A stretch of DNA of 64,000 bases from Hyalangium minutum (GTDB lineage: Bacteria; Myxococcota; Myxococcia; Myxococcales; Myxococcaceae), in NCBI RefSeq assembly GCF_000737315.1, contig NZ_JMCB01000002.1, positions 434,001 through 498,000 on the forward strand. The letters run 5' to 3'. The notes under the pieces are model-generated. The model had not been told where the DNA came from. It saw only the letters and a program-made list of their open reading frames with translations, and did not search any database. Shown here one piece after another: positions 1 to 15,917 of this stretch. The position numbers and the translations under genes are program-made. Positions within the stretch are counted from its first letter, which is position 1. Every line of letters begins with the position of its first letter.

Positions 1-471
1 ATTGGAGGGCACAAGAAGTTCGTGTTCGTCCCTCATGCCCTGGAAGAGCGAGGTTACCTGACGCTCGGACACGCTCTTCGGGCCGGTGAATACGCCATCA
101 TCCAGACGCTCGAGTCCGACAGTGCCTACTTCGTCGAGCGGTGGAGCTATCCCGATGAGCAGCTCAGGGACAAGGCGCTCGAGTTCGTGAGGAAGTATTG
201 CAGGGACATCCTCATTGGTCTCTTCCGGTCCTCCGAACACGCGCCCCCTTCTCTCTTCTTCGCGCACCGGGAGCACGTGCACGTCGCGGCACACATCGTG
301 ATGGCGGACAGTCTCATCCACCCCAAACGAGGTTTTCCCATGCTGCTCGAAGTCGCGGATTCCTCCTGCAGGGGCGTGTTTGGCACGGACTCCTTCCAAG
401 GGCTTGTCCAGGACGCCTACACGCGCGCGGGTGGCAAGTACGAGTACTTCAACGAGCGGCACTGGCGGTAG
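1..471 (+). CDS. NurA-like (RNase H/PIWI-fold) nuclease, C-terminal part; 5' end lies outside the window
   Basis: Frame 1 is open from base 1 (IGGHKKFVFVPH...) to TAG at 469-471. C-terminal GFPMLLEVAD resembles the NurA GYPxxLxxAH/D motif. Ends 6 nt before a HerA ATPase, the usual NurA partner. Catalytic N-terminal Asp not visible. Confidence 0.6.
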   Translation: MGGHKKFVFVPHALEERGYLTLGHALRAGEYAIIQTLESDSAYFVERWSYPDEQLRDKALEFVRKYCRDILIGLFRSSEHAPPSLFFAHREHVHVAAHIVMADSLIHPKRGFPMLLEVADSSCRGVFGTDSFQGLVQDAYTRAGGKYEYFNERHWR

Positions 472-477
472 CGGGAG

Positions 478-2748
478 ATGGAAGACATGGCGGATGAGAA
501 TTTGCCGAAGTTATCGGGGGTATCCCAGGGCAACAGTCCCTCGCGAGCGGTGGGGGGAGATCCCCGAGAGGTTCCTCGCTCCGCTGGAGGGGGCCTGCCT
601 GAAAGGCCTGTGCGTCTGGGAGCCGCGGTAGGAGCCATGGGGCAAGGTCGGCCGCCTGAGGCGACGACCCTTCCGGCCGCTGGCACACGCCAGGCACCTC
701 GGCCCCCTGTTCGGGAGACTGCCACTCCGGGCAAGCCCGTACCTTCTCCGGCCGCGAGCGCACCTCGGAGCGAGTCCCCACGTCCCGCACAACCGGCAGG
801 AGTCCGGGCCCAGCAGCCTCCGCGGCCCGACGGCAGCCCCAAAGAGGTTCTCCAGAGGCTTCCTGAGGCGGAAGCCCATGCGTTCACCGAGCTGCGCTCC
901 CAGGCGAATGCGGCAGCGGCGGAACTGAACCCCGAGCTCGAGAACGCAGTGGGGTTCACTCATTTCGACACCGCGTCGAGCCAGGACAACCTCATCACCG
1001 TGCTGATGACGCGGGCTGATCTGCACAAGTTGCCCTCGCAGACACTCGTGCGGGTGAAGTCCCTGGAAGACAAGCGCTCCTACCTGGGCGTGGTCGTCCG
1101 CGGCCCCTTCTCCGAGCCGGATGCCGTGGCCGCCAACTCCAACATCGCCGTGGGCGTGGTCGTCCAGGGCAAGAAGCTCTCCTTTACCTTTGATTACCAC
1201 GGCCGGGCCGAGATCGAGATCCTTGGCGAGGAGAACGACGGCAAGGTGCTTCCCCCCGGCCACCGCCCGCGCCCCAAGAGCCCCGTCTTCCTGCTGGATG
1301 ACGAAGAGAGCGAGCACGTCCTGGGGATGAAGGGAGAACTGTGTCTTGGAATGGTCGTGGGCTACAAGCAGATGGAGGCGCGCATCGACGCCCTGGACAA
1401 GTCCATCCTGCCCCGCCATACGGGCATCATCGGGACCACCGGCGGTGGCAAGTCCACCACCGTCGCGACGCTCATCCACCGGGCCCAGTCCGCTGGAGTC
1501 GCCACCATCGTCTTCGATGTGGAAGGTGAATACACCCATGTGGACCAGGCCACCGACGAGCCGACGATGCTCGCGGCACTCCAGCGCAGGAAGCAGCGGC
1601 CCGAGGGGGTGAAGGATCTGCACATCCATCACCTGATAGGCCGTGACACCCGCAACCGCCGTCATAAGCACCGGCATCCCTTCGCGTTGAGCTTCTCGAG
1701 CCTCTCACCCCATGCCATCGCGGAGATTCTCGAGATGACGGACGCGCAGCAGGAGCGCTTCCACAAGGCCTACGAGGTCACCAAGCTGCTGTTGGAGGAT
1801 CTGAAGATCTTCCCGAAGACTCCCGAAGAGCAGCAGCAGTTGATGGAACTCGATGAGCTCTCCACGGGCTATCCGCGCATGACTCTCGAGCACCTCTTGG
1901 ATGTCGTGAGCACGTACATCTACGTCCTGAGCAGTGAGGGAAGGGCTGAGAGCAAGACCAAGACCAAAGGATCCTCCCGGCAGGCCCCGGTGCCCGGCGA
2001 GAACATCGAGGAGGGGGCCGTTGAGTCGGCACCCTCCCAAGGGCCTCGGCTCTTCAGCGAGTTCAAGGAGCACCTGCACCTGGTCTTCCGCCGCGTGCAT
2101 GAGCAGAGCAGCCGGAGCGAGGTGAGCTGGAAGGCCTTGTTTGGCAGGCTCCTGCGCCTGCGGCGCCTCAAAATCTTCGACGTGGGGCATGCACGAGGCG
2201 TGGATTACGACTCCATGCTGACCCCGGGGCGGGTGTCGGTGATCGATCTGTCGGACACAGACTCGCCCCAGCTCAACAATCTCGTCATCGCCGACATCCT
2301 CCGGGGGCTCCAGGAGCGGCAGGAGGAGCGCTACCAGCGGGCCCAGGAACAGAACCACCCCGTCGACCCGGCCCTCATCATCATCGAAGAGGCCCACGAG
2401 TTCCTCTCGGCCAGCCGCATCGCGCAGATGCCGGTGCTCTTCGAGCAGGTCGCTCGCATCGCCAAGCGCGGACGCAAGCGCTGGTTGGGGCTCGTCTTCG
2501 TCACCCAGTTGCCCCAGCACCTGCCCAACGAGGTGCTCGGCCTGCTCAACAACTTCATCATCCACAAGATGACCGACAGCACCGTCATCTCCCGGATGCA
2601 GAAGTCCGTGGGTGGGATCGACGAGAGCCTCTGGGGCCGCGTCCCCCGGCTGGCTCCCGGGCAGGCCATCGCCTCGTTCAGTTCCTTCAAGCGGCCTCTG
2701 ATGATCACCGTGGATCCCGCTCCCGTGAAGCGGTTGCTCGTGGATTGA
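478..2748 (+). CDS. herA: HerA/FtsK-superfamily ATPase (HAS barrel + DUF87 type) with a Pro/Ala-rich N-terminal extension
   Basis: Walker A GTTGGGKS, strand-2 VFDVEGEY, Walker B IIIEEAHEF, arginine finger/Q motif GRKRWLGLVFVTQLP. HAS-barrel-like region LVRVKS...YLGVV...PRPKSPVFL. RBS-like GGGAG before the ATG. Confidence 0.9.
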   Translation: MEDMADENLPKLSGVSQGNSPSRAVGGDPREVPRSAGGGLPERPVRLGAAVGAMGQGRPPEATTLPAAGTRQAPRPPVRETATPGKPVPSPAASAPRSESPRPAQPAGVRAQQPPRPDGSPKEVLQRLPEAEAHAFTELRSQANAAAAELNPELENAVGFTHFDTASSQDNLITVLMTRADLHKLPSQTLVRVKSLEDKRSYLGVVVRGPFSEPDAVAANSNIAVGVVVQGKKLSFTFDYHGRAEIEILGEENDGKVLPPGHRPRPKSPVFLLDDEESEHVLGMKGELCLGMVVGYKQMEARIDALDKSILPRHTGIIGTTGGGKSTTVATLIHRAQSAGVATIVFDVEGEYTHVDQATDEPTMLAALQRRKQRPEGVKDLHIHHLIGRDTRNRRHKHRHPFALSFSSLSPHAIAEILEMTDAQQERFHKAYEVTKLLLEDLKIFPKTPEEQQQLMELDELSTGYPRMTLEHLLDVVSTYIYVLSSEGRAESKTKTKGSSRQAPVPGENIEEGAVESAPSQGPRLFSEFKEHLHLVFRRVHEQSSRSEVSWKALFGRLLRLRRLKIFDVGHARGVDYDSMLTPGRVSVIDLSDTDSPQLNNLVIADILRGLQERQEERYQRAQEQNHPVDPALIIIEEAHEFLSASRIAQMPVLFEQVARIAKRGRKRWLGLVFVTQLPQHLPNEVLGLLNNFIIHKMTDSTVISRMQKSVGGIDESLWGRVPRLAPGQAIASFSSFKRPLMITVDPAPVKRLLVD

Positions 2749-2795
2749 GACCGCGAGACCGCTTGGACACATTCGCGCGGGTGCCCTGAGGAGAT

Positions 2796-2815
2796 CCCCC
2801 GAAAGGGGGGTATGC
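2796..2815 (+). repeat. 20-bp hairpin repeat, copy 1 (CCCCCGAAAGGGGGGTATGC)
   Basis: Read directly; 18/20 identical to 5176-5195. Forms a C5-GAAA-G5 stem-loop. Confidence 0.7.
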
Positions 2816-2825
2816 CCTCGATGAC

Positions 2826-2856
2826 GCCTTTCCTAGCTTGTTTGTCACTAGGAGGC
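2826..2856 (+). promoter_or_regulatory. Hairpin occluding the Shine-Dalgarno of the kinase-synthetase gene
   Basis: GCC-TT-TCCTAG (2826-2836) pairs with CTAGGA-GGC (2848-2856): 9 Watson-Crick pairs with a 2-nt bulge, covering AGGAGG at 2850-2855; ATG at 2861. Confidence 0.5.
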
Positions 2857-2860
2857 TCGA

Positions 2861-4495
2861 ATGTCGAAGGGAGAGCGGGTTCTTGTCATCTCGGGTCCGA
2901 TTGGAGCAGGCAAGAGCACGCTTGCCCAAGGACTCGTCGAGCGCCATGGAGCACATCGTGTCAGCTCTCGGGAGCTGTTGCTCGCGCGCATGGGAGAACG
3001 CAGTGGGGACCGGCGCACGCTCCAGGAGGCCGGTGCGGCGCTGGACCGCGAGACGGGTGGGCGCTGGGTGGCGGACAGCGTGAAGGAAGTCCTTCAGCGG
3101 CAGGAAGGACCGCCCCGTCTACTCATCGTGGACTCTGTCCGCATCGCATCCCAGGCCGAGGCGCTGCGAAGAGCCCTGGGGTCCCGGGTGGTGCATGTGC
3201 ACCTGTCCGCGCCGGAGCAAGAACTCGCGGCGCGATACGAACAACGGCGTTCGCGGGCGGTGTCCGACTCCGAGGGCACCTCGTTCGAGGAGGCCCGCGC
3301 CGATGCCACGGAGCGCGGAGTGGAGACGCTCGCGGAGTTCGCGGACCTGGCGCTGAACACACACCGGCATCCCCCCGAGGCGGTGCTGGTCCAGGTCGCA
3401 TGCCTGCTCGGGCTGTTTGGCCGAGACGTGGAGCGGCTCGTCGACGTGTTGGTCGGAGGCCAGTATGGAAGCGAGGGCAAGGGGCAGATCGCCTCCTATC
3501 TCGCGCCGGAATACGACGTCTTGGTGCGCGTGGGGGGGCCCAATGCCGGACATCGCGTGTACGAGGAGCTGGGGCCTTATACCTTCCACCAGCTTCCGTC
3601 GGGGACACGGGCGGCGCCTCGCGCGCGGGTGGCGCTGGGGCCTGGAGCCACTCTCTCGCTGACGTCTCTTCAGCAAGAGATCGCTGACTGCCGGATCGAG
3701 CCGGGGAGGCTCTTCATCGATCCCCAAGCGCTCGTCATCGAACCCTCGGACGTCGCGTTCGAGGAAGAGTCCTTGCGGAAGCAAATTGCGTCGACGGCAC
3801 AAGGTGTGGGGATGGCGACGGCGCGCAAGGTGCTGCGCACGGCGGCGAAGCCGCAGGTCCGGCTTGCGAAGGAGCTTGAAGAGCTGAGGCCCTTTCTCTC
3901 CCCTACGCGAGAGGTGCTGGAGGACACCTATGCGGGTGGCGGTAAAATCCTCGTCGAGGGGACCCAGGGGGCGGGTTTGAGCTTGCACCATGGGGATTAT
4001 CCGTATGTGACCTCGCGGGACACGACGGCGAGCGGGTGTCTGGCGGAGGCCGGCATTGCTCCAGGCCGGGTGCGTAAGACGCTTCTGGTATGCCGCACTT
4101 ATCCCATTCGGGTGCAGAACCCCGATGGAGGGGATGGCACCTCGGGCCCCATGAGCAGAGAACTTTCCTGGGATGAGATTGCCCAGCGCTCGGGCTTGCC
4201 TCTGGAGGAGCTGCTGACGCAGGAGCGTACCTCGACGACGAAGCGGCAGCGGCGAGTCTCCGAGTTCGATTGGAGCCTGCTGCGCAAGGCTGCCGCGCTC
4301 AATGCCCCCACGGACGTGGTGCTGACCTTCGTGGACTATCTCGCCGCGAGCAACAGGTCCGCCCGGCGCTTCGAGCAATTGACCCCAGAGGTGCACCACC
4401 TCATTGAAGGCATCGAGCGGGTCGCCCAGGCCCCGGTGTCGATCCTGTCCACGGGCTTTGGTTTTCAGAACATCCTCGACAGGAGGGCGTGGTGA
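2861..4495 (+). CDS. Fusion of an N-terminal P-loop (d)NMP-kinase-like domain and a short PurZ/archaeal-type adenylosuccinate synthetase-like domain
   Basis: Kinase: GPIGAGKST, RRTLQEAG, LIVDSVR. Synthetase (about aa 194-544): GGQYGSEGKG, GGPNAGH, IASTAQGVG, EGTQG...HHGDYPYVTSRD, RTYPIRV, STTKRQRRV, LTFVDYL. Confidence 0.9.
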   Translation: MSKGERVLVISGPIGAGKSTLAQGLVERHGAHRVSSRELLLARMGERSGDRRTLQEAGAALDRETGGRWVADSVKEVLQRQEGPPRLLIVDSVRIASQAEALRRALGSRVVHVHLSAPEQELAARYEQRRSRAVSDSEGTSFEEARADATERGVETLAEFADLALNTHRHPPEAVLVQVACLLGLFGRDVERLVDVLVGGQYGSEGKGQIASYLAPEYDVLVRVGGPNAGHRVYEELGPYTFHQLPSGTRAAPRARVALGPGATLSLTSLQQEIADCRIEPGRLFIDPQALVIEPSDVAFEEESLRKQIASTAQGVGMATARKVLRTAAKPQVRLAKELEELRPFLSPTREVLEDTYAGGGKILVEGTQGAGLSLHHGDYPYVTSRDTTASGCLAEAGIAPGRVRKTLLVCRTYPIRVQNPDGGDGTSGPMSRELSWDEIAQRSGLPLEELLTQERTSTTKRQRRVSEFDWSLLRKAAALNAPTDVVLTFVDYLAASNRSARRFEQLTPEVHHLIEGIERVAQAPVSILSTGFGFQNILDRRAW

Positions 4496-5169
4496 GCGGG
4501 ATTCGCGCGGACGACTTCTCCGAACGCTTTCCCCTCCTCTTTCACATGGCGGAGGCAGGGAGCTGGCCGAGCATCCAGCGCCATGGGCTGCTGAGCACCT
4601 CGGCGCTCCTGGACCTCTTCGAGGTGAGGGGCGAGCAGCGGGTGGCCTTGGAAGCACGGCATCGGCCCGAGTCTGTCACGCTCTATCACCCCCGGCACGG
4701 GACTGCGGTCGTGCGAGACCAGAAACCCATGGATGATGCAGGGCTGCTGCGGAGTCTGAGCGGCGGACTGTCTCCAACGGATTGGTACCAACTGCTCAAT
4801 GCCCGGGTGTTCTTCTGGGTCACCCACGAGCGGCTCACGAAGCTTCTCAATGCCCGAGCGTACCGGAACAAGCGGCAGACGGTGCTGACGCTAGACACCG
4901 CGCGGCTGCTGGCTCGCCATGAGGCGCGCGTCATGCTGTCCCCACTCAACAGTGGAGCGACGAAGCCATCTGCATGGCCTCGTGGACCGGACACCTTCCT
5001 GCCGATGGTGCGATACCCGTTCTCTTCTTGGGACCAGAGGCGCAAGCGCCGGGATCCGGTGGTCGAACTGACCGTCACCTATTCCGTGCCCGACATCAGG
5101 GACTTCGTGCTGCGAGTCGAGGAGTACGCGGGGGGGAAGCCAGACACGCTGTTGTTCAAGGCCAGGTGA
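4489..5169 (+). CDS. DarT-like ADP-ribosyltransferase-fold protein (DUF7002-like)
   Basis: LFHMAEAGSWPSIQRHGLLS matches the DarT N-terminal YHxTxxxNLxSIxxxGLLS pattern; central VFFW; C-terminal VVELTV carries a candidate catalytic Glu. GTG start overlaps the upstream stop (translational coupling). Confidence 0.65.
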   Translation: MVSGIRADDFSERFPLLFHMAEAGSWPSIQRHGLLSTSALLDLFEVRGEQRVALEARHRPESVTLYHPRHGTAVVRDQKPMDDAGLLRSLSGGLSPTDWYQLLNARVFFWVTHERLTKLLNARAYRNKRQTVLTLDTARLLARHEARVMLSPLNSGATKPSAWPRGPDTFLPMVRYPFSSWDQRRKRRDPVVELTVTYSVPDIRDFVLRVEEYAGGKPDTLLFKAR

Positions 5170-5175
5170 GTCACA

Positions 5176-5195
5176 CCCCCGAACGGGGGATATGC
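5176..5195 (+). repeat. 20-bp hairpin repeat, copy 2 (CCCCCGAACGGGGGATATGC)
   Basis: Read directly; lies 6 nt after the ART stop and 52 nt before the next ATG. Confidence 0.7.
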
Positions 5196-5247
5196 GTCTC
5201 TGCCTCGGGTCTCTAATTTGTGTCCTGAAGCAACCCAGGAGACGTCA

Positions 5248-5442
5248 ATGGCGACCGGAGTACAGGAGTTCAAGACGGGTGAGAAGTGCGAGACCAAAGG
5301 CAACTACGCGTTCGTTCGGTACGTGGACAATCCGCAGACCCCCCTTCCGACAATCAATGAGCGGAACATTCCTCTCGACAAGGGGGACACGTTCCCTCCC
5401 ATCAAGTCTCAGAACAGGGCAGCTTGGTGGAGGCTTACCTAG
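5248..5442 (+). CDS. Small YjzC-like protein (64 aa)
   Basis: AGGAG RBS then ATG 5248. FKTGEKCETKGNY...LDKGDTFPP...WWRL resembles the YjzC pattern (KxGEKAPxxGxY...LxKGDxFP). Confidence 0.65.
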   Translation: MATGVQEFKTGEKCETKGNYAFVRYVDNPQTPLPTINERNIPLDKGDTFPPIKSQNRAAWWRLT

Positions 5443-5459
5443 GTGACGTAGACGTGATG

Positions 5460-5493
5460 GCGAGCGTCGGAGCCTGTGAGCTCTGACGCTCGC
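5460..5493. terminator. Stem-loop between convergent genes, probable terminator
   Basis: GCGAGCGTCGGAGC / GCTCTGACGCTCGC: 14-bp stem with one G:U pair and a 6-nt loop, between the stops at 5442 (+) and 5503 (-). Confidence 0.65.
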
Positions 5494-5502
5494 ATCTAAG
5501 CG

Positions 5503-6774
5503 CTACCGGCAGGGGTAGTTGGACTTCGTGCAGGTGACGCCGGAGTTATACGAGTCGTTGAAGTGGGCGTAGTACCCGTCATAGAGCGGGTGCGTCGTCC
5601 CGGTCTCGCCCGCCAACTTGACGAAGATCTCCTCGTTCTCGTTGAGCGCGTCCTGGGACCAGTTCTGCGAGCCCGTGTACACCCGGTACTGGTACGCGGA
5701 GCCGTACTTGCCGTACACGAGGAAGAACTTGTCGTGCACCTTGTCGTGCCGGCGGATGTTCACCCCCGCATCCAGCAGCGAGTTGTAGACCGACTGCGCC
5801 ATGTCGATGCCGTCGGTCGAGTTCCCGCTCACCACCATCCACACCGCGCAGCCCCCGTTGCGGTAGCGCAGCACCTGGTTGAGTAGCTCCGGGCGCCCCG
5901 TGGTGACGAACGCCATGCCAATGCGCAGGCGGCAGTTCGCGTCCGGCGTGACGTCGTTCAGCCGCGTGACGATGGTGTCCGTCTGGCCCACGGCCTCGGG
6001 CGAGGCGTAGACGTCCGCAGGGTTGGACAGGTAGTAGCCCCGGCCGCTCGCCGAGTCGTAGTAGTCATTGTTGGCGTAGTGCCGCCGGTTCCACATGTCC
6101 GAGAAGTGGGCGTTGAGCCCGTCGTACAGCGTGACGGCGTCATACACGGTGATGGCGTTGTTGGACGCATCCGGTCCGCTCGCGTACGTCAGGTTCGATG
6201 AGCCGAACCAGGACACGTTCGGGTAGAGCACCCCGCTGGGATCCGTCGCCTGGCTGAACGTGAACATCTTCGTGTGCATATTGCCGGCGCTGCTCGTGCC
6301 GATGCAGCCCCCGCCACCACTCGCGTTGGTGCAGAACTTCGCGTTGGCGATCTTCTTGAGGGTCGCCACCGCCGGATCCGTGGAGGCTGCGTTCTTCCCA
6401 TCCAGCACCAGGGACACAGAGACGCCCCGCGTCTGCGCCGCCAGCAGCGCATCCGCCACGCCATCAATGCTGATGGAGTGAATGGCGCCCCGGATGGTGC
6501 CACCCGCGGGCGTGCTGTGGATGAGCCGCTTCAGCTCGTCCGTGATGGTGTAGTCCCGGCCCGAGAACGCGGGCGGGTTGCTGAAGTGTGCCCAGACCCG
6601 CTTGCCGCCCACCGTCCCCGTCGCGGAGCTGATCCCCGCCTGAACGACGCCGGTCTCCTCGCCCAGGAGCTCTTCTTCCTCGGGAGAGCGAGGCGCGCAG
6701 GCGGTGAGCGCCGCCGCGCTGAGAGCCACTGCCAGTGCCTGCAGAACCGCCTCAATGTTTGTCCGCGAACGCAT
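5503..6774 (-). CDS. Phospholipase D-superfamily lipoprotein with two HxK modules
   Basis: Start MRSRTNIE at 6774 follows GGAGG; lipobox LTAC; HTK...GSSN and HDK...GSQN motifs. The ORF-track extension to 7182 is upstream read-through. Confidence 0.8.
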   Translation of the reverse strand: MRSRTNIEAVLQALAVALSAAALTACAPRSPEEEELLGEETGVVQAGISSATGTVGGKRVWAHFSNPPAFSGRDYTITDELKRLIHSTPAGGTIRGAIHSISIDGVADALLAAQTRGVSVSLVLDGKNAASTDPAVATLKKIANAKFCTNASGGGGCIGTSSAGNMHTKMFTFSQATDPSGVLYPNVSWFGSSNLTYASGPDASNNAITVYDAVTLYDGLNAHFSDMWNRRHYANNDYYDSASGRGYYLSNPADVYASPEAVGQTDTIVTRLNDVTPDANCRLRIGMAFVTTGRPELLNQVLRYRNGGCAVWMVVSGNSTDGIDMAQSVYNSLLDAGVNIRRHDKVHDKFFLVYGKYGSAYQYRVYTGSQNWSQDALNENEEIFVKLAGETGTTHPLYDGYYAHFNDSYNSGVTCTKSNYPCR

Positions 6775-6867
6775 CTGCTCCCTCCAGGGGCTCGACAACC
6801 CGAGAAAGCCAGAATCACGGAGATAATGATAAATCAAGTGCTCCAGGAGCCGGTGACTTTCGATATT

Positions 6868-6886
6868 GAAAATGAGAACCATTATC
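6868..6886. promoter_or_regulatory. Fur box
   Basis: GAAAATGAGAACCATTATC is 16/19 to GATAATGATAATCATTATC, in an AT-rich gap upstream of hmuY; a partial box GATAATGATAA lies at 6822-6832. Confidence 0.8.
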
Positions 6887-6976
6887 AAATAGGGTCGCGG
6901 CCCGAAGTCTTCCTCTCTCTGCACACGCCCCCTGGACAGGACTGTGGCCATGAACTCCTCCACCGAAGTGAGACCG

Positions 6977-7735
6977 ATGAATCGCGAGACCCGAGCCCGA
7001 TGGGTATGGGCGATGATGATGATGTCGATGGTGCCGCTGTGGGCAGGCTGCGGCACGGACGACGAGCCCGAGCCCGCACCGAAGTGTGAGGCCAGCGCCG
7101 TGCGGTGCACCGAGCAGAGCATCGACCAGCTCGACCTGCTCACCACCGTGTCCACGGGAGAGATTCGCGAGGAGGGAACCACCTCCGGCCAGTTCCATAC
7201 CTATGTGGATGCTCGCGCGGGCGGGCTCACGCCCACGCAGTCCTATACCTACGTCAGCTTCACCGAGCAGGGGCTGACCCGGGTGTCGGTGGATGATCAG
7301 GCGGCACTGGCGTCGACGGACTGGGACATTGCCTTCCGCCGCTTCGTCATCCGGGTGAACAGCGGCGTCTCGGGGCCCTCCTGCGTCTCCGTGGCGCAGG
7401 CCCCGGTGGGCACGACCTTTGACTCGGTGACCCGGGTGGACCCCGCGTGGCAGTTCCGCACGGAGAACTACTTCACGGAGACCTGCGAGCTCGTCGAGGA
7501 CGACACCGGCATCGGCGCGCCGGCCGCGGTGATGGGCAGCTACTGGTCCTACGAGAGCTGTCTGGTCATGACGGGCAACGTCTTCGTGCTGCGTCTGGCC
7601 GACAGCCGCCACGTCAAGGTGCAGGTGACGAGCTACTACGAGCCCTCGGTCCAGGAGACGTGCAACCAGACGGGGAGCGCGACCCAGCCGAGCGGCGCGG
7701 CGCAGTTCCGGGTCAAGTGGGCCTTCCTCCCGTGA
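6977..7735 (+). CDS. hmuY: HmuY-family heme-binding lipoprotein
   Basis: Lipoprotein signal ending WAGC; WDIAFRR and VKVQVTSYY motifs; Fur box upstream. Start could be 6944 or 6950. Confidence 0.8.
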   Translation: MNRETRARWVWAMMMMSMVPLWAGCGTDDEPEPAPKCEASAVRCTEQSIDQLDLLTTVSTGEIREEGTTSGQFHTYVDARAGGLTPTQSYTYVSFTEQGLTRVSVDDQAALASTDWDIAFRRFVIRVNSGVSGPSCVSVAQAPVGTTFDSVTRVDPAWQFRTENYFTETCELVEDDTGIGAPAAVMGSYWSYESCLVMTGNVFVLRLADSRHVKVQVTSYYEPSVQETCNQTGSATQPSGAAQFRVKWAFLP

Positions 7736-9201
7736 GGTGGGCGGCGCTGGCGGTCCTCGCCTTCGCCGGGTGTGGCCCGGGCCACTCAGCGCCCGAGCCA
7801 CATGACCGCTCACAGGCCGCGTTGTTGGCGGAGAGCCGGCCGACCTCTCCGTCCTCGAGCCTGCCGCGCTTCGAGGCCACCGAGCAGGTGGAGTCCGTGG
7901 TGTCCCCTGGGGCGCATTTCCGCATCCACTTCACGCGCAGCGGGCCCAATGCGGTGAAGGCTGCGGATGCCGATGGCAATGGCATCCCGGATGCGGTCGA
8001 CATCGTGGCTCGGACCTACGATCGGGTCGCGGCCTTCTACGCGGGGCTGGGCTACCTGCCTCCGCCCGAGGACTCCTGGCTGCCGGGAGACTTCGGCGGA
8101 GACGGGCTCTTCGATGTCTACCTGTTGGACTTCGCCGGGCGTGCGGACGGGGCGTTCCGGACAGATGGTTGCCAGGGCGCGGAGAGCCAGTGCTCGGGGC
8201 ACATGCTCCAGGAGAATGACTTCACCGGGTACAGCTACCGCTCCTATGAGGAGGCGGTGGACACGCTGGCCAGCCATGAGTTCTTCCATGCCGTGCAGGC
8301 CGCCTACCACCCCAACCTCGGGAGCGTGGCGGTGGAGGGCACCGCGGTCTGGGCGACGGAGCGCTTCGCCCCGGCCTTGGAGGATCTGGAGCAGTTCTCC
8401 TCCGCGTACCTCGATCGGCCGGATCGCAGCCTGGTCGTGGATCCCGACGGGCCGGGCAGCTTCTCCTACGGCTCCTCGCTCTACTTTCAGTTCTTGAGCG
8501 AGCGCTTCGGAGACCGGCTCATCCTGTCGATGTGGGAGGAGAGCGTCCGCACCCCCAGCGTGCGCTGGCCGGCGCTGGTGGATACCGTGCTGCGCCGCGA
8601 TTCGGGCGCGGACTTCGACCGTGCCTTCGCGGAGTTTGCCCAGTGGAACATGGCCACCGGTTCACATGCCCGGCCGGGCCAGGGGTACGCGCGCGGCGAG
8701 GGCTATGCCGAGCTCACCTCCTCCTCCAAGACCTTCCCAGTGGATGAGCCCTCGGTGCGGGTGGCTCCTGCCTCGACGCGATACTTCGAGGTGGCGGGAG
8801 CACAGAACATCTCCGTGAGCTTCCAGCCCACGGATGATGCGGAGACAGGGGCGCTCCACCTCCTGGTGGCAGTGGTGGGCCAGGACGGCACGCTCCAGGT
8901 GACCCGGGCGGACAGTCCAGGGGCTCTGCTCGCCCAGGTGTCCGCGCAGGGTGCCTCCCGCGTGCTGGTGGCGGTCGTGGATGGGCGCCACCAAGGGCTG
9001 GGGCGGTACGGGCGGCTCTGCATCACGGACACCGCCACCGGCTCGCCTTGCGGCGGGGACGCTCCCTCCGATGGCGAGGACAAGGACACGGGCTGCCAGT
9101 CAGCCCCCGGCGGATGGACGTGGTGGCTGTCCTGGCTGGTGCTGGCCGCTGGCGGGTACCGCCCCCTCCGGAAGCGGTCTCACCTCGAAGCTTCGCGCTG
9201 A
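7732..9201 (+). CDS. MXAN_6640-type secreted zinc metalloprotease lipoprotein with a MYXO-CTERM-like tail
   Basis: GTGA overlap with hmuY; lipobox FAGC; HEFFH zincin motif followed by EGTA; C-terminal GCQSAPGG + hydrophobic stretch + RPLRKR. Confidence 0.75.
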   Translation: MRWAALAVLAFAGCGPGHSAPEPHDRSQAALLAESRPTSPSSSLPRFEATEQVESVVSPGAHFRIHFTRSGPNAVKAADADGNGIPDAVDIVARTYDRVAAFYAGLGYLPPPEDSWLPGDFGGDGLFDVYLLDFAGRADGAFRTDGCQGAESQCSGHMLQENDFTGYSYRSYEEAVDTLASHEFFHAVQAAYHPNLGSVAVEGTAVWATERFAPALEDLEQFSSAYLDRPDRSLVVDPDGPGSFSYGSSLYFQFLSERFGDRLILSMWEESVRTPSVRWPALVDTVLRRDSGADFDRAFAEFAQWNMATGSHARPGQGYARGEGYAELTSSSKTFPVDEPSVRVAPASTRYFEVAGAQNISVSFQPTDDAETGALHLLVAVVGQDGTLQVTRADSPGALLAQVSAQGASRVLVAVVDGRHQGLGRYGRLCITDTATGSPCGGDAPSDGEDKDTGCQSAPGGWTWWLSWLVLAAGGYRPLRKRSHLEASR

Positions 9202-10229
9202 GAGGCCGTGGCGCTCACGCCCCGCTCCACGAAGCGCTCGAGGGTTGCCCGGATCTGCGCGCGCATGTTGGCGGCCGATTCGGGCTTTCCCTCGCGCTGG
9301 CGCTGCCGGTAGGTCTCCGCGAGCGCGAAGAGCTCCTCCGAGCGCCTCCGCCCCTCGGCGTTCTCTCTCATCGTGAGGTGGGGATGGGCCTGGAAGAGGG
9401 CGTGCCACTCCTGGCGCACCTCGCTCCAGAAGCCCTGCGTGTCCGTCCAGTAGGCGCTCGCCTCGGGCAGGCTCTGGGCCTCCGGCAGCCGGGTGTAGAC
9501 GTTGAGTCCCCGCTCCCGTACCAGCGCATGCGGCACCGGGCCGAGCACCACCTTCAGGCTGTCCTGCTCGTGCACCCAGCCCGTGGGCGTCAAGGCGTGC
9601 CGGTTGGTGCCAGTCAGGACGTCGTAGTCGCTCCGCTTCGTGTACTCGCGGCGCGGCAAGGGGCGCCATGTCTCGCCGGACTGCCAGGAGGACACTCCGC
9701 GAGCATGGGTCCAGCGCCCCGAGCCCTCATACCGAGGCCCATCGTCGACCTCGAACACGGCTTGGCTCCACGTACACCGGGCCTCCGCCGGGGACAGCGC
9801 ATGGTGCTCCCATGACTGGCGGCCGCGAAACTCGAGCAACTCGGTGTCCTCGAACGTCCAGTCCTGGCGCCAGTGCTTGAGGGGCGCTGGCTGTCCGTCT
9901 TTCGTCACCACCAGGATGTGCTGGAGCGACACGCGCCCCGGCGTGTCCTCCACCACCCCCACCCACTCCGTCCCCGTGGTGCGGTAGGGAGCCCGCGGCG
10001 TGTAGCCCTCGCTGAGGCTCACCGTCTCTTCAAAGGCGAACTCCACCCGGTAGCTTCCCGCCATGCGAAGAATCGCGGCCCTGTCGCGCTCCGGATCACA
10101 CCCCTCTGCCGCCGGCGCTTCCACCTGGACCGTGGGGGAGATGCTCCGAGGCGCGCAGGCCAGGGTCAGTGTGAGCAGGGCCCAGCGCGGCACAGGGCTC
10201 CTCCGTGGCTCCGTTGTGTGGAACGTCAT
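9180..10229 (-). CDS. DUF6607-like lipoprotein
   Basis: DRAAILRMAGSYRV, HWRQDWTFED, PLPRREYTKRSDY and GWVHEQD motifs; in an operon with hmuY and the TonB receptor. Confidence 0.7.
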   Translation of the reverse strand: MTFHTTEPRRSPVPRWALLTLTLACAPRSISPTVQVEAPAAEGCDPERDRAAILRMAGSYRVEFAFEETVSLSEGYTPRAPYRTTGTEWVGVVEDTPGRVSLQHILVVTKDGQPAPLKHWRQDWTFEDTELLEFRGRQSWEHHALSPAEARCTWSQAVFEVDDGPRYEGSGRWTHARGVSSWQSGETWRPLPRREYTKRSDYDVLTGTNRHALTPTGWVHEQDSLKVVLGPVPHALVRERGLNVYTRLPEAQSLPEASAYWTDTQGFWSEVRQEWHALFQAHPHLTMRENAEGRRRSEELFALAETYRQRQREGKPESAANMRAQIRATLERFVERGVSATASQREASR

Positions 10230-10992: not shown

Positions 10993-12906
10993 TCAGAGCT
11001 GGAAGGACAGCCCGGCTTGGAAGGTGCGAGGCAGGATGGGCAGATCCGTGGTGTTGCCAGTCGCGGTGAGGTTGGAGCCGGCCACGAAGAGGCGGAAGCC
11101 CGCGGGGAGCTGCTGAGAGGCGCGGGCGTCCAGCGAGACGTAGGGGTCGGACTGATACGGGTCCGCGGTCCCATCCCCGTCCACGTCCGGGTAGAAGGGG
11201 CGGGGGCCCACGAGCGCGCCGCGCACCCACGCCTCCAGTCCCCAGGGCCGGAAGCGCCAGGTGGCCTGGGCCGTGAAGCGGTGGCGGGCCTGGCCCTCCA
11301 GGGGCTCTCCGGTGGTCTGATCCCTGCCGACCGTGAGCGTGTAGCTGGCGTCCACGGTGAGGCCGCCGGGGATGCGCTGGCGCAGGCCCACTTCGCCTCC
11401 GCGGACGCTGGCCCGCTCGAGGTTGGTGTAGATGAAGTGCTGCCCCTCCGTGTCTTGCCGGAGCGAGATGGTGATCATGTCCCGCAGCGAGTGCTGATAG
11501 CCACTCAGCCAGAGCAGAGTCGGCGCGGCGGGCCGCAACTCCACGGACAGGTTCACGCTGCGGGAGCGCTCGGGCTGCAGGTCCGGATTGCCGCGCACGG
11601 TGTAGCCCACCGAGGGATTCTCGAAGTCGAGCAGCAGCTCCTGGAAGCTGGGCGCACGCAGCCCCCAGCCATAGCTGGCCCGGAGCGTGACGCGGGAATG
11701 CGGATCCAGCCGCAGTGCGAGCCGCGGCGTGATGGCAGGGCCGAACTGCGAGTCCAGATCGAGCCGCGCCCCCGGGACGAGGATGAGGCGCGGCTGGAGG
11801 AGCACCGTCCAGTTGTCCTGCACGTAGAGCGACGCGCGGCCCCGCTGCCCGCTCCCGCTGTCCAGCCGGTCCGCTGCGAGGTGCTCTCCGAGCAGCTCCA
11901 CGCCTTGGATGAGCACATGCCGCTCTCCGAGCTTCAGATCGAGCTGACCGCCGAGCTGGGCCAGCTGATCCCGCGTGTCCTCCACCGAGTCGAGCGCGGT
12001 CCCCTGGCGCTGGTCGAGCAGGTAGCGGCGCTTGAACCCCGTGTAGTACGCCTCCGTGCGGAGGCTCATCGTGTCACTGAGCCGCCAGGAGGGCGACAGC
12101 CTCACGGACAAGGTGTCATCCCGGCTGGCGCGGTCGAAGGTGGCGCCCGTCGCTCCGAGGTCGACTCCGCGCTGGACGCGCCGGGAGTAGGACAGCGTGC
12201 TGGCCAGCTCCGAAGACTCCCCGCGCACGTCCCCGCGAGCGGAGACCTGGAAGCCCGCGAGGCTGCTGCCCGTGGTGCCAATGTCCGCGGGCTCCAAATC
12301 GTAGGCATCGCGGCGCTGTAGGCCTCCACTCACCCGCAGGCCCCAGTCCTCCCGCTGCATCTCACCCGTGGCGTCCACGTCGGCCTGCCGCAGGCTCCCG
12401 TACGTCACACGAAGGTCGGCGCCGAGCGGGCGGCGGGCCCGGCGGGTGATGAGGTTCACCACTCCCGCCACCGCGTCACTTCCATAGAGGACCGAGGAGG
12501 GACCTTTGACGATCTCCACCTGCTCGATGTCCTCCAGAGAGATGCGGGACAAGTCCACCGCGCCATTGACGCGCCCGTTGACCCGCTCGCCGTCCACGAG
12601 GACCAGCGCGTACTCGGGCCCGAGTCCCTGCACTTGGAGGGTGGCCCCCGAGAACGTGGACTGCACCTCCAGCCCCGGCTGGGCGCCGAGCAGCTCCGCG
12701 ACGCTCTGGGCCCCACTGGCCACGATCTCCGCGCGGGTGATGACCTCGGTCGCGACCGGAGTGTCCTCCAGCCGCTCGGGAGAACGGGCGGCCGTCACCA
12801 CTGTCTGCGCGGGAGGAGCCTCCACGCCGCCGTCAGAGGGCTCCTCGCCCCAGGCCCTCCACGGAATGGCGACCGCCACGAAGAGAAGACACCAGCGCCC
12901 CGACAT
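10993..12906 (-). CDS. TonB-dependent receptor (heme/siderophore type)
   Basis: Plug motifs VVTAARS and IEQVEIVKGPSSVLYGSDAVAGVVNLIT; NPDLQPERS; C-terminal aromatic beta strand; Fur box upstream. Confidence 0.92.
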   Translation of the reverse strand: MSGRWCLLFVAVAIPWRAWGEEPSDGGVEAPPAQTVVTAARSPERLEDTPVATEVITRAEIVASGAQSVAELLGAQPGLEVQSTFSGATLQVQGLGPEYALVLVDGERVNGRVNGAVDLSRISLEDIEQVEIVKGPSSVLYGSDAVAGVVNLITRRARRPLGADLRVTYGSLRQADVDATGEMQREDWGLRVSGGLQRRDAYDLEPADIGTTGSSLAGFQVSARGDVRGESSELASTLSYSRRVQRGVDLGATGATFDRASRDDTLSVRLSPSWRLSDTMSLRTEAYYTGFKRRYLLDQRQGTALDSVEDTRDQLAQLGGQLDLKLGERHVLIQGVELLGEHLAADRLDSGSGQRGRASLYVQDNWTVLLQPRLILVPGARLDLDSQFGPAITPRLALRLDPHSRVTLRASYGWGLRAPSFQELLLDFENPSVGYTVRGNPDLQPERSRSVNLSVELRPAAPTLLWLSGYQHSLRDMITISLRQDTEGQHFIYTNLERASVRGGEVGLRQRIPGGLTVDASYTLTVGRDQTTGEPLEGQARHRFTAQATWRFRPWGLEAWVRGALVGPRPFYPDVDGDGTADPYQSDPYVSLDARASQQLPAGFRLFVAGSNLTATGNTTDLPILPRTFQAGLSFQL

Positions 12907-12935: not shown

Positions 12936-12984
12936 AAAGTCAAATATGTCAGGGAGACAACTTCTTCCTATTGTCGGGATTCGT

Positions 12985-14472
12985 ATGCTCCTTCGCCCAC
13001 TGGCCCTTGTTGCTGCGCTGTTACTCGCTGCATGTGGATCGGACCCTGGCGCCCCGCGCGGCCCCTTGCCAGACCCAGACACGCAGGCGCCGCAGGTTCA
13101 GGTCCTGTCGCCCACGATGCACCAGAGCATCACCGTGCGGCGCGTGCGCGTGGAGGGGCTGGCCACGGATGATCGGCAGCTGGTGTCCCTCGCCTGGGAG
13201 CTCAATGGCGGGACGCCGCAAGCGCTGGACGTGACGCAGCTGGAGGCTCTGGGCGCCTTTGCCTTCGAGGTGACTCCCCGCCCGGGTGCCAACGCGTTGG
13301 TGCTGCGCGCCCAGGACGCCGCTGGCAACACCACGGAGGGGCGCACCACCTTCCTGTTCGGAAACCAGAGCGGAGGCGGCGGGCTGCACAGCGGGGTGAT
13401 CCGTGACGGCTCCCTCTACACCTGGGGCCGGAACAACCGGGGGCAGCTCGGCCTCGGCGCCGCGGTGACGGAGGACCAGAAGCTGCCGCGGAAGGTGCCG
13501 ACCCTCGAGGATGTCGCCGCCATGGCCTTCAACCAGAACCAGTCCCTGGCGCTGAAGGCGGACGGCACCGTGTGGAGCTGGGGCGAGAACGCGCAGGGGC
13601 AGCTTGGCGTGGGGACTCCGCCCGAGCCGGGCTCACCCCACACGGCGGACCTCACGCCTCGCTCGAGCCCCACGCGGATTCCGGGGCTGAGCGGCGTGGT
13701 GGCCATCGCGCTGGGCTACCGCCATGGTCTGGTGCTGATGGCGGATGGCACCGTGCGAGCCTTTGGGGACAACTCCACCGGCCAACTGGGGGATGGCTCC
13801 TCGGAGGCCCTCAGGGACTCCCCCGTCACGGCCGTGGGGCTGACGGACATCGTGAAGGTGGCCGGTGGCTCCATGCACTCGGTGGCGTTGAGGGCGGACG
13901 GCACCGTCTGGGTCTGGGGGCGCAACACCTACGGCAACCTCGGCCAGGGCACTTCGGATGCGGTGGCCCATCCCAATCCCGTGCAGGTGCCCGGTGTCAC
14001 CGGGGTGATCGACATCGCCACGGGCAGGGACCACGTGCTCGCTTTGCACGCGGATGGGACGGTCTCCTCGTGGGGGCTGGATGCCAGTGGCCAGCTCGGC
14101 TTTGGCGAGCCCATCCCGGACGAGCAAAGCGCCACGCCCGTGAAGGTCAAAGGGCTGGCGGATGCGCGCGCCGTCTTCGCCAACGCCAACATGAGCTATG
14201 CCCGGCGGGCGGATGGCACGCTCGTCTCCTGGGGGCAGAACTTCAACGGCCAGCTCGGCAACGGCGGCAAGACGGACAGCAACGTTCCTGTGACTTCAGT
14301 TCCTCTGCTCAAGGGGCTCTCCTCGTTGGGGGCGGGCGCCACGCACGTCGTCTCCATCCGTGAGGATGGGAAGTTCTTCACGTGGGGGTGGAACTCGCGC
14401 GGCAGCCTGGGCCGGGATGATCTGCTCGATAACTGGTCCTACCCTGAGCCGATCCAGGTCTCGCTGCCATGA
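12985..14472 (+). CDS. Lipoprotein with an Ig-like domain and an RCC1 beta-propeller
   Basis: Lipobox LAAC; repeated WGxNxxGQLG and GxxHxxAL units. Confidence 0.85.
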   Translation: MLLRPLALVAALLLAACGSDPGAPRGPLPDPDTQAPQVQVLSPTMHQSITVRRVRVEGLATDDRQLVSLAWELNGGTPQALDVTQLEALGAFAFEVTPRPGANALVLRAQDAAGNTTEGRTTFLFGNQSGGGGLHSGVIRDGSLYTWGRNNRGQLGLGAAVTEDQKLPRKVPTLEDVAAMAFNQNQSLALKADGTVWSWGENAQGQLGVGTPPEPGSPHTADLTPRSSPTRIPGLSGVVAIALGYRHGLVLMADGTVRAFGDNSTGQLGDGSSEALRDSPVTAVGLTDIVKVAGGSMHSVALRADGTVWVWGRNTYGNLGQGTSDAVAHPNPVQVPGVTGVIDIATGRDHVLALHADGTVSSWGLDASGQLGFGEPIPDEQSATPVKVKGLADARAVFANANMSYARRADGTLVSWGQNFNGQLGNGGKTDSNVPVTSVPLLKGLSSLGAGATHVVSIREDGKFFTWGWNSRGSLGRDDLLDNWSYPEPIQVSLP

Positions 14473-15917
14473 GAGGTCCGGGCCTGGCGCTGCTGGTGGT
14501 GTGGCTGGCGAGCTCCGCCTGCAGCCCGGGAGATGCCCCGGTTCCGTTTCCTCCCGAGGAAGAGCCCGCGCCGTCCGGACCCGAGCCGCCGCCCCGCCAT
14601 GACTTCGTGGAGCCTGGCGAGGAGCTGCCAGGCGGCGCAACCACCGTGGTGGATACGAGCCCCGAGGCCTTTACCCATCCCGCGGCGAACCTCTCGGTGG
14701 AGAGGCGCTCGGAGTTTCTCGTGGGCGAGGCCTTCTTCGAGGTGGACTGGCTCGTGGCGCCCAACGCCCGGACGGATCGGGACGGGCTGGGCCCGCTCTA
14801 TCATGCGGTCTCCTGTCTGGCGTGCCATCAGCGCAACGGGAGAGGCGCTCCGCCCAGTCCGGGGGAGGGCGTGCTCTCGTTGCTGGTGCGGATGAGTGTG
14901 CCGGGCGCGGACGCCCAGGGCGCTCCTGTGCCGGAGCCTACCTACGGAGATCAGCTGCAGCCCCGTGCCGTAGCGGGTGTTCCGCCCGAAGCCTCCGTGC
15001 AGGTGCGCACCACGGAGCTGCCGGGGGCCTTCGAGGACGGTGAGCCCTATGCGCTCGAGGCTCCCGAGTACGTCCTCACGGATCTGGCCCATGGCCCGCT
15101 GCGGCCCGACACGCGCTTGTCACCGCGGGTGGCCCAGCCGGTGTTCGGCCTTGGCCTGTTGGCGGCCGTGCCCGAGGCGCTCCTGCTGGAGTGGGCGGAT
15201 GCCGAGGACGCGAACGGGGACGGCATCTCCGGCAGGCCCAATCGCGTGTGGAACCGGCGGCTCGGGCAGACCGTACTGGGGCGCTTTGGATGGAAGGCCA
15301 ACCAGCCGAATCTGGAGCATCAGAATGCCGGTGCTCTGGCGGGCGATATGGGGCTCACTTCGCCGCTGGCGCCCAGTGAGTCCTGCACCTCCGCGCAGGC
15401 CGCGTGCCTCGCCGCGCCCAACGGTGGCACGCCCGAGGTGGACGCGCGCAAGCTGACGGCGCTCACCTTCTACACCCATGTCCTCGGAGTGCCCGCCCGC
15501 CAGGGGGTGGATGTGCCCCGGGTGCTGCGAGGCAAGGAGCTCTTTCACCGTGCCGGGTGCGCACGGTGCCATCGGCCATCGATGGAGACAGGCGCACTGG
15601 AGGGCCACCCCGAGCTGTCCCATCAGCTCATCTGGCCGTACACCGATTTGCTGCTGCATGACATGGGAGCGGGGCTGGCGGACGGACGCGAGGACTTCGC
15701 GGCCTCTGGACAGGAGTGGCGCACACCGCCGCTGTGGGGGCTGGGGCGAACAGCGGCCGTGAGTGGACACACGCGCTTGCTCCATGACGGGCGGGCCCGC
15801 TCGGTGATGGAGGCCATCCTCTGGCACGGAGGCGAGGCCGAGGCGTCACGCGAGCACGTCCGGCGGCTCACGCGCGAGGAGCGCACGGCCCTCCTCGCAT
15901 TCCTCGAGTCCCTCTGA
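14469..15917 (+). CDS. Di-heme oxidoreductase family protein (DUF1111) lipoprotein
   Basis: CLACH and CARCH heme-c motifs; GRFGWKA, YTDLLLHDMG, WRTPPLWG, LLHDGRAR; ATGA overlap with the upstream gene. Confidence 0.88.
   Translation: MRGPGLALLVVWLASSACSPGDAPVPFPPEEEPAPSGPEPPPRHDFVEPGEELPGGATTVVDTSPEAFTHPAANLSVERRSEFLVGEAFFEVDWLVAPNARTDRDGLGPLYHAVSCLACHQRNGRGAPPSPGEGVLSLLVRMSVPGADAQGAPVPEPTYGDQLQPRAVAGVPPEASVQVRTTELPGAFEDGEPYALEAPEYVLTDLAHGPLRPDTRLSPRVAQPVFGLGLLAAVPEALLLEWADAEDANGDGISGRPNRVWNRRLGQTVLGRFGWKANQPNLEHQNAGALAGDMGLTSPLAPSESCTSAQAACLAAPNGGTPEVDARKLTALTFYTHVLGVPARQGVDVPRVLRGKELFHRAGCARCHRPSMETGALEGHPELSHQLIWPYTDLLLHDMGAGLADGREDFAASGQEWRTPPLWGLGRTAAVSGHTRLLHDGRARSVMEAILWHGGEAEASREHVRRLTREERTALLAFLESL

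Follow-up and report, generated by a model that had tools for sequence, protein, structure and literature searches.

We analysed a 64,000-nucleotide stretch of the Hyalangium minutum genome (contig NZ_JMCB01000002.1, positions 434,001 to 498,000; hereafter the window), and this report concerns one of its genes (2861-4495, forward strand, 544 amino acids [aa]), which joins an N-terminal P-loop domain of the nucleoside monophosphate (NMP) kinase fold to a synthetase domain resembling the PurZ and PurZ0 enzymes of phages. We read its product as a bifunctional nucleotide-converting enzyme that would form the core of a mobile cassette together with DUF7002, a putative ADP-ribosyltransferase (ART) encoded by the next gene, and whose harmful or defensive output on the purine pool would be gated by ADP-ribosylation; we hold this reading tentatively, with a probability of about 0.45. 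The fusion gene, like the other open reading frames (ORFs) defined stop-to-stop, begins at an ATG with an AGGAGG Shine-Dalgarno sequence 7 nt ahead, and its TGA stop codon is overlapped by the GTG start of the DUF7002 gene (GTGA), an alternative GTG lying at 4489.

Profile comparison and structure prediction confirm residues 1-193 as an intact-looking P-loop domain of the NMP-kinase fold with a signature hairpin of its own. Residues 7-137 match the generic P-loop families AAA_33 (3.6e-10) and AAA_18 (2.3e-9), both over the Pfam cut-offs, and the models for adenylate, shikimate and guanylate kinases match only under theirs (16.8 versus 26.8 bits for ADK, 30 versus 168 for TIGR01351 and 17 versus 160 for guanylate kinase). 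A profile of 32 domain sequences, compared with the PDB, retrieved the Sulfolobus AdkA-like protein SSO1041 (3LW7/3H0K) over its full length at 2.5e-9, together with many adenylate kinases, and an AlphaFold model of the isolated domain (predicted local distance difference test [pLDDT], 85.4) was best superposed by Foldseek on the AMP-bound structure 3LW7 (template modelling [TM] scores, 0.70/0.78), followed by AK1, AK5 and UMP/CMP kinases (0.63-0.67) and shikimate kinases (0.52-0.58). An earlier, sequence-only reading of the window had likened the domain to NMP kinases and to phage deoxynucleoside monophosphate (dNMP) kinases. The first half of that likeness is borne out by the structural comparison it had proposed, which returned NMP kinases at TM 0.6-0.78 for a model of pLDDT 85; the second half is not, since what is shared with phage enzymes is the generic fold. 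Predicted viral structures matching the model at TM 0.6-0.7 comprise stand-alone kinases of uncultured phages, dNMP kinases and adenylate kinases, with the viral dNMP kinases listed only amid generic kinases, the model for T4 gp1-type dNMP kinases (Pfam DNMK, PF21448) does not match the window protein, and PHROG 139 is matched over residues 6-154 at an E value of 7.5e-6.

The residues that a kinase would use are strongly conserved. Across 241 distinct fused homologues, the Walker A motif GxxxxGK[ST] is intact in 239, K18, R51, W69, D91 and H112 are invariant and R94, R125, E151, D62 and H114 are almost so; the family signature consists of the hairpin R-x3-Q-x2-G-x2-LD-x4-G-x-W and an HxH strand. 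The sequence-only reading had offered a degenerate P-loop in most homologues as grounds for abandoning the kinase, and that objection falls because the P-loop is intact in nearly all of them; the motifs to which it had drawn attention (GPIGAGKST, RRTLQEAG and DSVR) lie where it placed them (Table 1), and the domain end that it set at 3439, residue 193, falls at the conserved linker before the synthetase. Compared with the known NMP kinases (SSO1041/UPF0200 [3LW7], adenylate and UMP/CMP kinases), the domain has the same fold (TM 0.63-0.78), Walker A motif, Asp-x-x-Arg after strand 3 and arginines of a short LID helix, but differs in its own invariant hairpin and HxH strand and in remaining under all the curated cut-offs. 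Among 1.84 billion representatives, 461 proteins match the kinase profile below 1e-30, and the best 150 of them include 44 fusions, 56 fragments, about a dozen frameshifted fusions and some 35 true stand-alone proteins of about 185 aa. Several entries that appeared to be the closest stand-alone kinases (P0122, P0126 and others) were rejected as frameshifted or truncated fusions. Distant stand-alone paralogues with 35-38% identity were also seen at loci L004 (6001-6567) and L005 (6001-6651), where they adjoin genes for pyridoxal-phosphate-dependent decarboxylases on contigs of 243-436 kb that also carry TnpB-like, HNH and RadC genes, in unrelated contexts.

The remainder of the protein, residues 194-544, is by its motifs and tree position a PurZ/PurZ0-like synthetase lying within the phage PurZ radiation. 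Its best pairwise match is the 340-aa PurA of Pyrococcus, to which it aligns end to end (1.6e-46), and next come PurZ0 of Gordonia phage Archimedes (7VF6) and PurZ of phiVC8 and S-2L. The NCBIfam score is under the cut-off for archaeal PurA (NF003295, 271 versus 368) as for PurZ (NF038379, 217 versus 300), so that neither curated family accepts the domain, and the same is true of TIGR00184 (181 versus 395.55). The motifs GSEGKG, GPNAGH and EGTQG are present, the first with serine at the position of the PurA catalytic Asp13; this residue is serine in every kinase-fused sequence and in all but one (glycine) of 96 sequences checked, and several residues are inserted directly after the conserved IRV. 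Conservation of Asp13 reaches 99% in PurA of the E. coli-type clade, and serine takes its place in 100% of the 147 phage sequences that make up the PurZ group (PMC12884076). The S-2L structure shows this serine beside the 2-amino group of dGMP, and an insertion following the conserved valine presses the latter against the ribose 2' position (PMC8342488). It is on these grounds that we read the serine and the insertion after valine as marks of PurZ. Where PurA has TGRRRR, the window protein has TSTTKRQRR (type TTK[RK]xRR), and its TFVD keeps the aspartate of the TKLD-type pocket, as do PurA and the PurZ0 of Ghobes, in contrast to the NFCN of Vibrio PurZ; the retained aspartate tentatively points to GTP as the phosphate donor. 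In a neighbour-joining tree (all our trees are distance-based), the serine-bearing sequences exclude Pyrococcus PurA and one canonical PurA in 39 of 50 bootstraps, a moderate level of support.

Set beside the structurally known phage enzymes (7VF6, 6FM1 and 7ODX), the domain thus has the same short archaeal-type PurA scaffold, Ser at the Asp13 position, GPNAGH, post-Val insertion, aspartate loop (TT[KN][KR]xRR) and, as in PurZ0, GTP-type pocket Asp, but it is only 34-37% identical to them, carries an N-terminal kinase and is encoded in a bacterial chromosome beside an ART gene. Pyrococcus horikoshii PurA (5K7X/2D7U) is of similar length, about 340 aa, but keeps the catalytic Asp and lacks both the insertion after RV and the kinase domain. 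Among the plasmid matches from Sinorhizobium and Rhizobium (H13-H23), another short gene of PurA type recurs that is kinase-free, annotated as adenylosuccinate synthetase and 33-36% identical to residues 194-542.

The union of the two domains is remarkably constant. The best 120 full-length matches, from Myxococcota, Acidobacteriota, Gemmatimonadota and other phyla, are almost all 527-546 aa long and contain both domains at 55-88% identity, the nearest relatives being those of Hyalangium, Archangium and Stigmatella (Myxococcota). A metagenome scan with full-length alignment found at least 573 relatives, and the best 80 loci were analysed (the metagenome fractions reported here describe this sample); the kinase domain is present in all 80. 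Kinase-fused synthetases form a single clade in 60/60 and 50/50 bootstraps, and these sequence comparisons support a fusion that arose once and has remained essentially invariant in its clade, which also answers the question of the sequence-only reading as to how often the fusion is conserved. Its statement that canonical PurA has no such domain is upheld as well: a kinase domain is found in none of the 219 PurZ/PurZ0 records of cultured phages, which, like the PurA entries of the PDB, cover only residues ~190-544. The branching order of phage and cellular fusions is recovered in 16/60 bootstraps, and for this reason we make no claim as to which of them came first. In one neighbourhood (L253, 502-3812), a stand-alone kinase and a separate, unfused PurZ-like gene occur together, the kinase being accompanied by a 232-aa protein of unknown type and a 341-aa protein that by eye is dCTP-deaminase-like, with the 348-aa Ser-type PurZ-like gene on the opposite strand; in another (L025), a second kinase paralogue lies directly upstream of the fusion.

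The fusion also occurs on 10 viral contigs (IMG/VR), on three of them in cassette form and on the others not. Contigs L173, L176 and L182 have a T4-like portal, helicase, DnaB, the fusion, a DnaG-like primase, PolA with uracil-DNA glycosylase-like and exonuclease domains, and RecA; L171 has PolA, a VWA protein, the fusion, AAA_28, a 5'-deoxynucleotidase (NT5C) and a DNMK-type kinase; and L174 has PolA nearby. On L178, a nucleoside-deoxyribosyltransferase (NDT)-like gene directly follows the fusion, a type of partner reported for PurZ0 phages (PMC12884076). A known Vibrio phage with 2-aminoadenine (Z) in its DNA shows a similar array of polymerase, primase, PurZ, DatZ and helicase. These settings fit a role of the fusion in DNA-precursor synthesis in uncultivated phages. 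BLAST within the 8-kb flanks on the viral contigs found no relatives of the DatZ, Dut, NDT or polymerase of known Z phages, and since DatZ and Dut relatives are missing from these flanks, we do not claim that the phages have Z genomes. The two-step nucleotide module proposed in the sequence-only reading therefore survives in part: the intact domain, the invariant fusion and the replication and nucleotide modules of the phages speak for it, but it overlooked that the context in cells is an ART cassette.

In cells, the constant partner is DUF7002. The protein matches Pfam PF22531 (DUF7002) at 8.5e-76 and does not match the DarT family (Pfam DUF4433/DarT). Foldseek matches of its AlphaFold model (pLDDT 93) are all ADP-ribosyltransferases (cholera toxin A1, DarT1, DarTG, Tpt1/KptA, pertussis toxin and pierisin), at low TM scores of 0.3-0.45 (DarT1 and DarTG, E 1.5e-3 to 3.5e-3, TM about 0.4), and the predicted structure thus places its kinship with DarT at superfamily level only. 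Its invariant residues H18, F107-F108-W109 and E192 correspond to the H/FFW/E motifs of the DarT-like 'Lmac_3114' family, in which an adenylosuccinate-synthetase gene lies nearby in 60% of cases and a Pseudomonas variant of the locus has an AAA gene plus a NUDIX gene (PMC12522546). That remark, in a survey of Legionella ARTs, is the sole mention of the system in the literature that we found; we found no experimental study of it, and it is absent from a review of NAD and ADP-ribose in viruses. The survey treats the same family with the same motifs as we do, but proposed a loose regulatory link and did not recognise the PurZ type of the synthetase, the kinase fold, the partner gene described below or the phage relatives.

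A scan for DUF7002 with one genome per species gave 333 loci in 185,579 species genomes. Among the best 80, which were analysed, 42 have the kinase-synthetase fusion directly upstream and 38 are solo; the latter, mainly from metagenome-assembled genomes (MAGs) of Acetobacteraceae (a subset of loci L022-L089), keep all candidate catalytic residues, and no conserved partner was found for them, the long stop-free stretches upstream holding no domains. Starting from the fusion, DUF7002 lies downstream in 74 of the 76 assessable metagenome loci (three as divergent copies confirmed by Pfam) and adjoins it in 11/11 intact plasmid copies. At one locus of a Bryobacterales MAG (L053, 5372-7654), kinase, PurZ-like synthetase and DUF7002 form one frame of 761 aa with the junction ...DRRKWSMPD..., which is either a natural triple fusion or the outcome of a lost stop codon.

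Most relatives have a third component. A gene of about 470 aa that runs right up to the start codon region of the fusion was found in 33/48 genome loci and 73/75 metagenome loci; its N-terminal part is an IrrE/CapP-type M78 peptidase with HExxH (PDB IrrE, 3.5e-12; CapP, 1.1e-8; PADLOC capP, 2e-21), and its C-terminal part is a macrodomain of the BT1257/SCO6735/ALC1/TARG1 class (3e-47 to 6e-11) with a weak match to DarG. This M78-macro gene never stands beside solo DUF7002 in the best 80 DUF7002 loci, and no macrodomain was found anywhere in the 64-kb window, where a HerA-like gene holds the position that the M78-macro gene has in most relatives. HerA was seen with the fusion only in the nearest relatives (L010-L012, 86-89% identical), where the HerA gene and a gene of about 400 aa follow sigma70-like, helix-turn-helix and short CapP-like M78 genes on the same strand; we rejected it as a conserved component, and the HerA array could represent a system of its own or, in this lineage, a substitute for the M78-macro gene. 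The cassettes occur in mobile and defence-rich settings, adjoining Mrr, Dcm, Vsr and GmrSD (L002), Wadjet (L006), OLD/UvrD genes, or transposases and integrases (L007), and some are on conjugative plasmids. No DatZ, MazZ/DUF550, Dut/NDT-like, DpoZ or dedicated polymerase gene was found in the window or in cellular relatives, and neither the fusion nor DUF7002 is represented by a PADLOC model.

Our preferred explanation can be laid out as a series of steps: (i) judged by its motifs, the synthetase would act as a PurZ0-like enzyme that uses GTP to activate a guanine (deoxy)nucleoside monophosphate at its 6-oxo group and joins aspartate to it, and the product would be an N6-succino-2-aminoadenine nucleotide, the residues of the aspartate loop being conserved; (ii) the PurB of the host would remove fumarate to leave Z monophosphate; (iii) judged by fold, conservation and context, the kinase would be an active NMP kinase, most likely turning Z or succino-Z monophosphate into the diphosphate, and would draw the product toward the triphosphate independently of the GMP kinase of the host; and (iv) the output would be gated or restrained by ADP-ribosylation, with DUF7002 as the writer and the macrodomain, where present, as the eraser, a step that we infer by likening the cassette to operons that encode writer, eraser and target together. 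The cassette would comprise two genes in the window, those for the fusion and the translationally coupled DUF7002, to which most relatives add the M78-peptidase-macrodomain protein. In the known Z pathway, the monophosphate kinase step is left to host GMP kinase (bioRxiv 10.1101/2025.10.22.683976; PMC8342488), and expression of that pathway is toxic to E. coli (PMC8342488). The associations are asymmetric in that the ART persists alone, the cellular fusion almost never occurs without the ART, and the macrodomain is found only alongside the fusion; combined with the toxicity of the Z pathway in E. coli, this asymmetry leads us to regard the nucleotide-converting enzyme as the harmful output and ADP-ribosylation as the switch. 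The role of the cassette is, as far as gene content tells, probably defensive or toxin-like, and because of its ART partners and the absence of DatZ, MazZ and DpoZ nearby, we take the window locus for a conflict-type cassette, not for a Z-genome pathway.

Several observations weigh against this reading: (i) GMP kinases are not among the nearest kinase structures, which are those of AMP kinases, UMP/CMP kinases and an archaeal protein of unknown role, and the domain is under the curated cut-offs of all the named kinase families; (ii) the window protein has a weak match to the kinase-like region of a dCTP-deaminase model (PADLOC 'dCTPase', E 0.004), and kinase-like P-loop domains can have a regulatory, not a catalytic, function when they are fused to defence enzymes that modify nucleotides; (iii) at a single locus (L252, 373-1678), a 192-aa stand-alone kinase is followed directly by DUF7002 with no synthetase, an arrangement that links the kinase with the ART and not with the synthetase; and (iv) the preference of the synthetase for ribo or deoxy and for G or I substrates is deduced from motifs alone. 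As to the target of the ART, macrodomains of the TARG1 class act on ester-, phosphate- and thymidine-linked ADP-ribose, not on guanine-N2 adducts, which argues mildly against the 2-amino group. Two other models, one after DarTG and one built on an ADP-ribosylated nucleotide, fit the gene content about as well.

In the first of these, DUF7002 would be a toxin acting on DNA or RNA, the macrodomain its antitoxin, and the kinase-synthetase an accessory for trigger, supply or neutralisation. The fold matches to DarT1, DarTG and Tpt1, the H/FFW/E triad, the TARG1/ALC1/SCO6735-class macrodomain upstream in relatives with its weak match to DarG, the translational coupling and the mobile or defence-island settings would all suit such a system, and a macrodomain of the TARG1/DarG class is indeed in the same operon in most relatives. 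Unlike in DarTG, however, the ART belongs to a separate Pfam family, a nucleotide-converting enzyme stands between the ART and macrodomain genes, and the macrodomain of the relatives is fused to an IrrE/CapP-type peptidase and is missing from the window. Moreover, the macro gene follows the fusion and not the ART, and the solo DUF7002 genes (38/80), with their catalytic residues kept and no macro gene beside them, indicate that the ART is tolerated alone, as an indiscriminate toxin should not be. We consider a DarTG-like system unlikely, yet worth keeping in view.

According to the second model, kinase, synthetase and DUF7002 would act in sequence to make an ADP-ribosylated, base-modified purine nucleotide that serves as an immune signal or replication poison and is erased by the macrodomain. 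The occurrence of all three domains in one polypeptide at L053 and of kinase and ART without synthetase at L252 are what such a chain would produce; DUF7002 is structurally like the phosphate-ADP-ribosylating Tpt1/KptA, the acceptor could be a phosphate or the succinyl carboxylate, TARG1-class macrodomains cleave ester- and phosphate-linked ADP-ribose, and the Pseudomonas variant has its NUDIX gene. On the other hand, the cassette comes with no gene for a receptor or effector, solo DUF7002 is conserved without any nucleotide-making enzyme and phage fusions do without the ART, and we find the model rather improbable.

A further question is whether the P-loop domain is a forward kinase at all. 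It could be a nucleotide sensor or regulator, or it could work in reverse, from NDP to NMP, feeding the synthetase and draining guanine nucleotides. In AvcD and other defensive dCTP deaminases, too, a kinase-like P-loop domain is N-terminal to a base-modifying nucleotide enzyme of a conflict system, but the partner there is a deaminase, not a PurA-type ligase, and the similarity is marginal, as given above. The weak match to the dCTP-deaminase model, the scores under every curated kinase cut-off and the GTP-marking Asp of the synthetase, owing to which both substrates could be guanine nucleotides, are in keeping with such a role. Against it, the conserved Walker A Lys, D91, R94 and the LID residues R125/R129 in the 241 homologues are what a working phosphotransferase needs, and the extra kinase genes beside the fusion at L025 and L171 suggest a phosphorylation ladder; we think a sensor or a reverse reaction quite improbable.

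A self-contained dZTP pathway that replaces adenine in the DNA of the element or host has the PurZ-type hallmarks and the phage relatives in replication modules to recommend it, but is very improbable when the lack of DatZ, MazZ/DUF550, Dut/NDT-like and dedicated polymerase genes, the constant partnership with ADP-ribosylation proteins and the location in a myxobacterial chromosome region beside ordinary genes are considered. An ordinary purine-biosynthesis paralogue, that is, PurA fused to adenylate kinase and making AMP and then ADP, is suggested by the public annotation 'adenylosuccinate synthetase' and the weak adk matches, but is hardly credible with Ser in place of the catalytic Asp13 in every member, the scores of 271 versus 368 and 181 versus 395.55 and a patchy, mobile distribution on plasmids and in defence islands.

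The surroundings of the cassette in the window are summarised in Table 1. No sigma-70 consensus match was found in the spacer ahead of the fusion gene, and a promoter and terminator scan of 2600-5600 gave nothing informative; the protein of about 400 aa encoded ahead of HerA is matched by nothing in PDB, Pfam or PADLOC. The window is GC-rich, with 64-66% GC in the first 8 kb and about 69-70% in later stretches, the first 8 kb lying 3-5% below what follows, and the products encoded 3' of the cassette are of the ordinary-chromosome type (PLD-like, HmuY-like, DUF6607, TonB-dependent receptor, RCC1-repeat and di-haem peroxidase).

Table 1. Positions of the kinase-synthetase fusion gene, its motifs and its neighbours in the window; domain names are assignments from the evidence given
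Feature	Position	Strand	Remarks
NMP-kinase-fold P-loop domain, N-terminal	2861..3439	+	aa 1-193; Pfam, profile search, AlphaFold/Foldseek, conservation
Walker A GPIGAGKST	2894-2920	+	aa 12-20
Helical hairpin R51-x3-Q55...D62...W69	3011-3067	+	
RRTLQEAG	3011-3034	+	aa 51-58
D91-x2-R94 (DSVR)	3131-3142	+	aa 91-94
LID-like R125/R129	3233-3247	+	
Conserved linker LGLFGR	3407-3424	+	Short, joins kinase to synthetase domain
PurZ0-like short adenylosuccinate-synthetase-family domain	3440..4495, stop included	+	aa 194-544; motifs, tree, PMC12884076, PMC8342488
DUF7002 (= 'Lmac_3114' family), DarT/Tpt1-like ADP-ribosyltransferase fold	4492..5169	+	Pfam, model, PMC12522546
Spacer, HerA-like gene to fusion gene	2749..2860	+	112 bp; carries AGGAGG
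HerA-like ATPase, directly upstream of fusion gene	478..2748	+	Pro/Ala-rich N-terminal ~150 aa
3' end of ~400-aa gene of unknown family	1..471	+	Extends beyond window edge
Genes 3' of cassette	5503-7182; 6944-7735; 9180-10229; 10993-12906; 12946-14472; 14469-15917	-; +; -; -; +; +	

To conclude, the cassette is widespread and brings together in a new way components that are each of a known kind: a synthetase of PurZ type, an NMP kinase, a DarT-like ART and a macrodomain. To our knowledge, PurZ chemistry has so far been known only as a phage device that writes 2-aminoadenine into phage DNA, with the kinase step provided by the host. A PurZ-type synthetase of single origin joined to an NMP kinase of its own suggests a more self-sufficient Z-type pathway and offers a candidate for its dedicated kinase, and the same enzyme is found in bacteria and archaea of many phyla in a very common cassette with ADP-ribosylation proteins. 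If the cassette is indeed a defence or toxin system, it would unite two themes of immunity, nucleotide-pool corruption and ADP-ribosylation, in one operon and give DUF7002 a function, and an ADP-ribosylated, base-modified purine nucleotide, if that is what is made, would be a product not described before.

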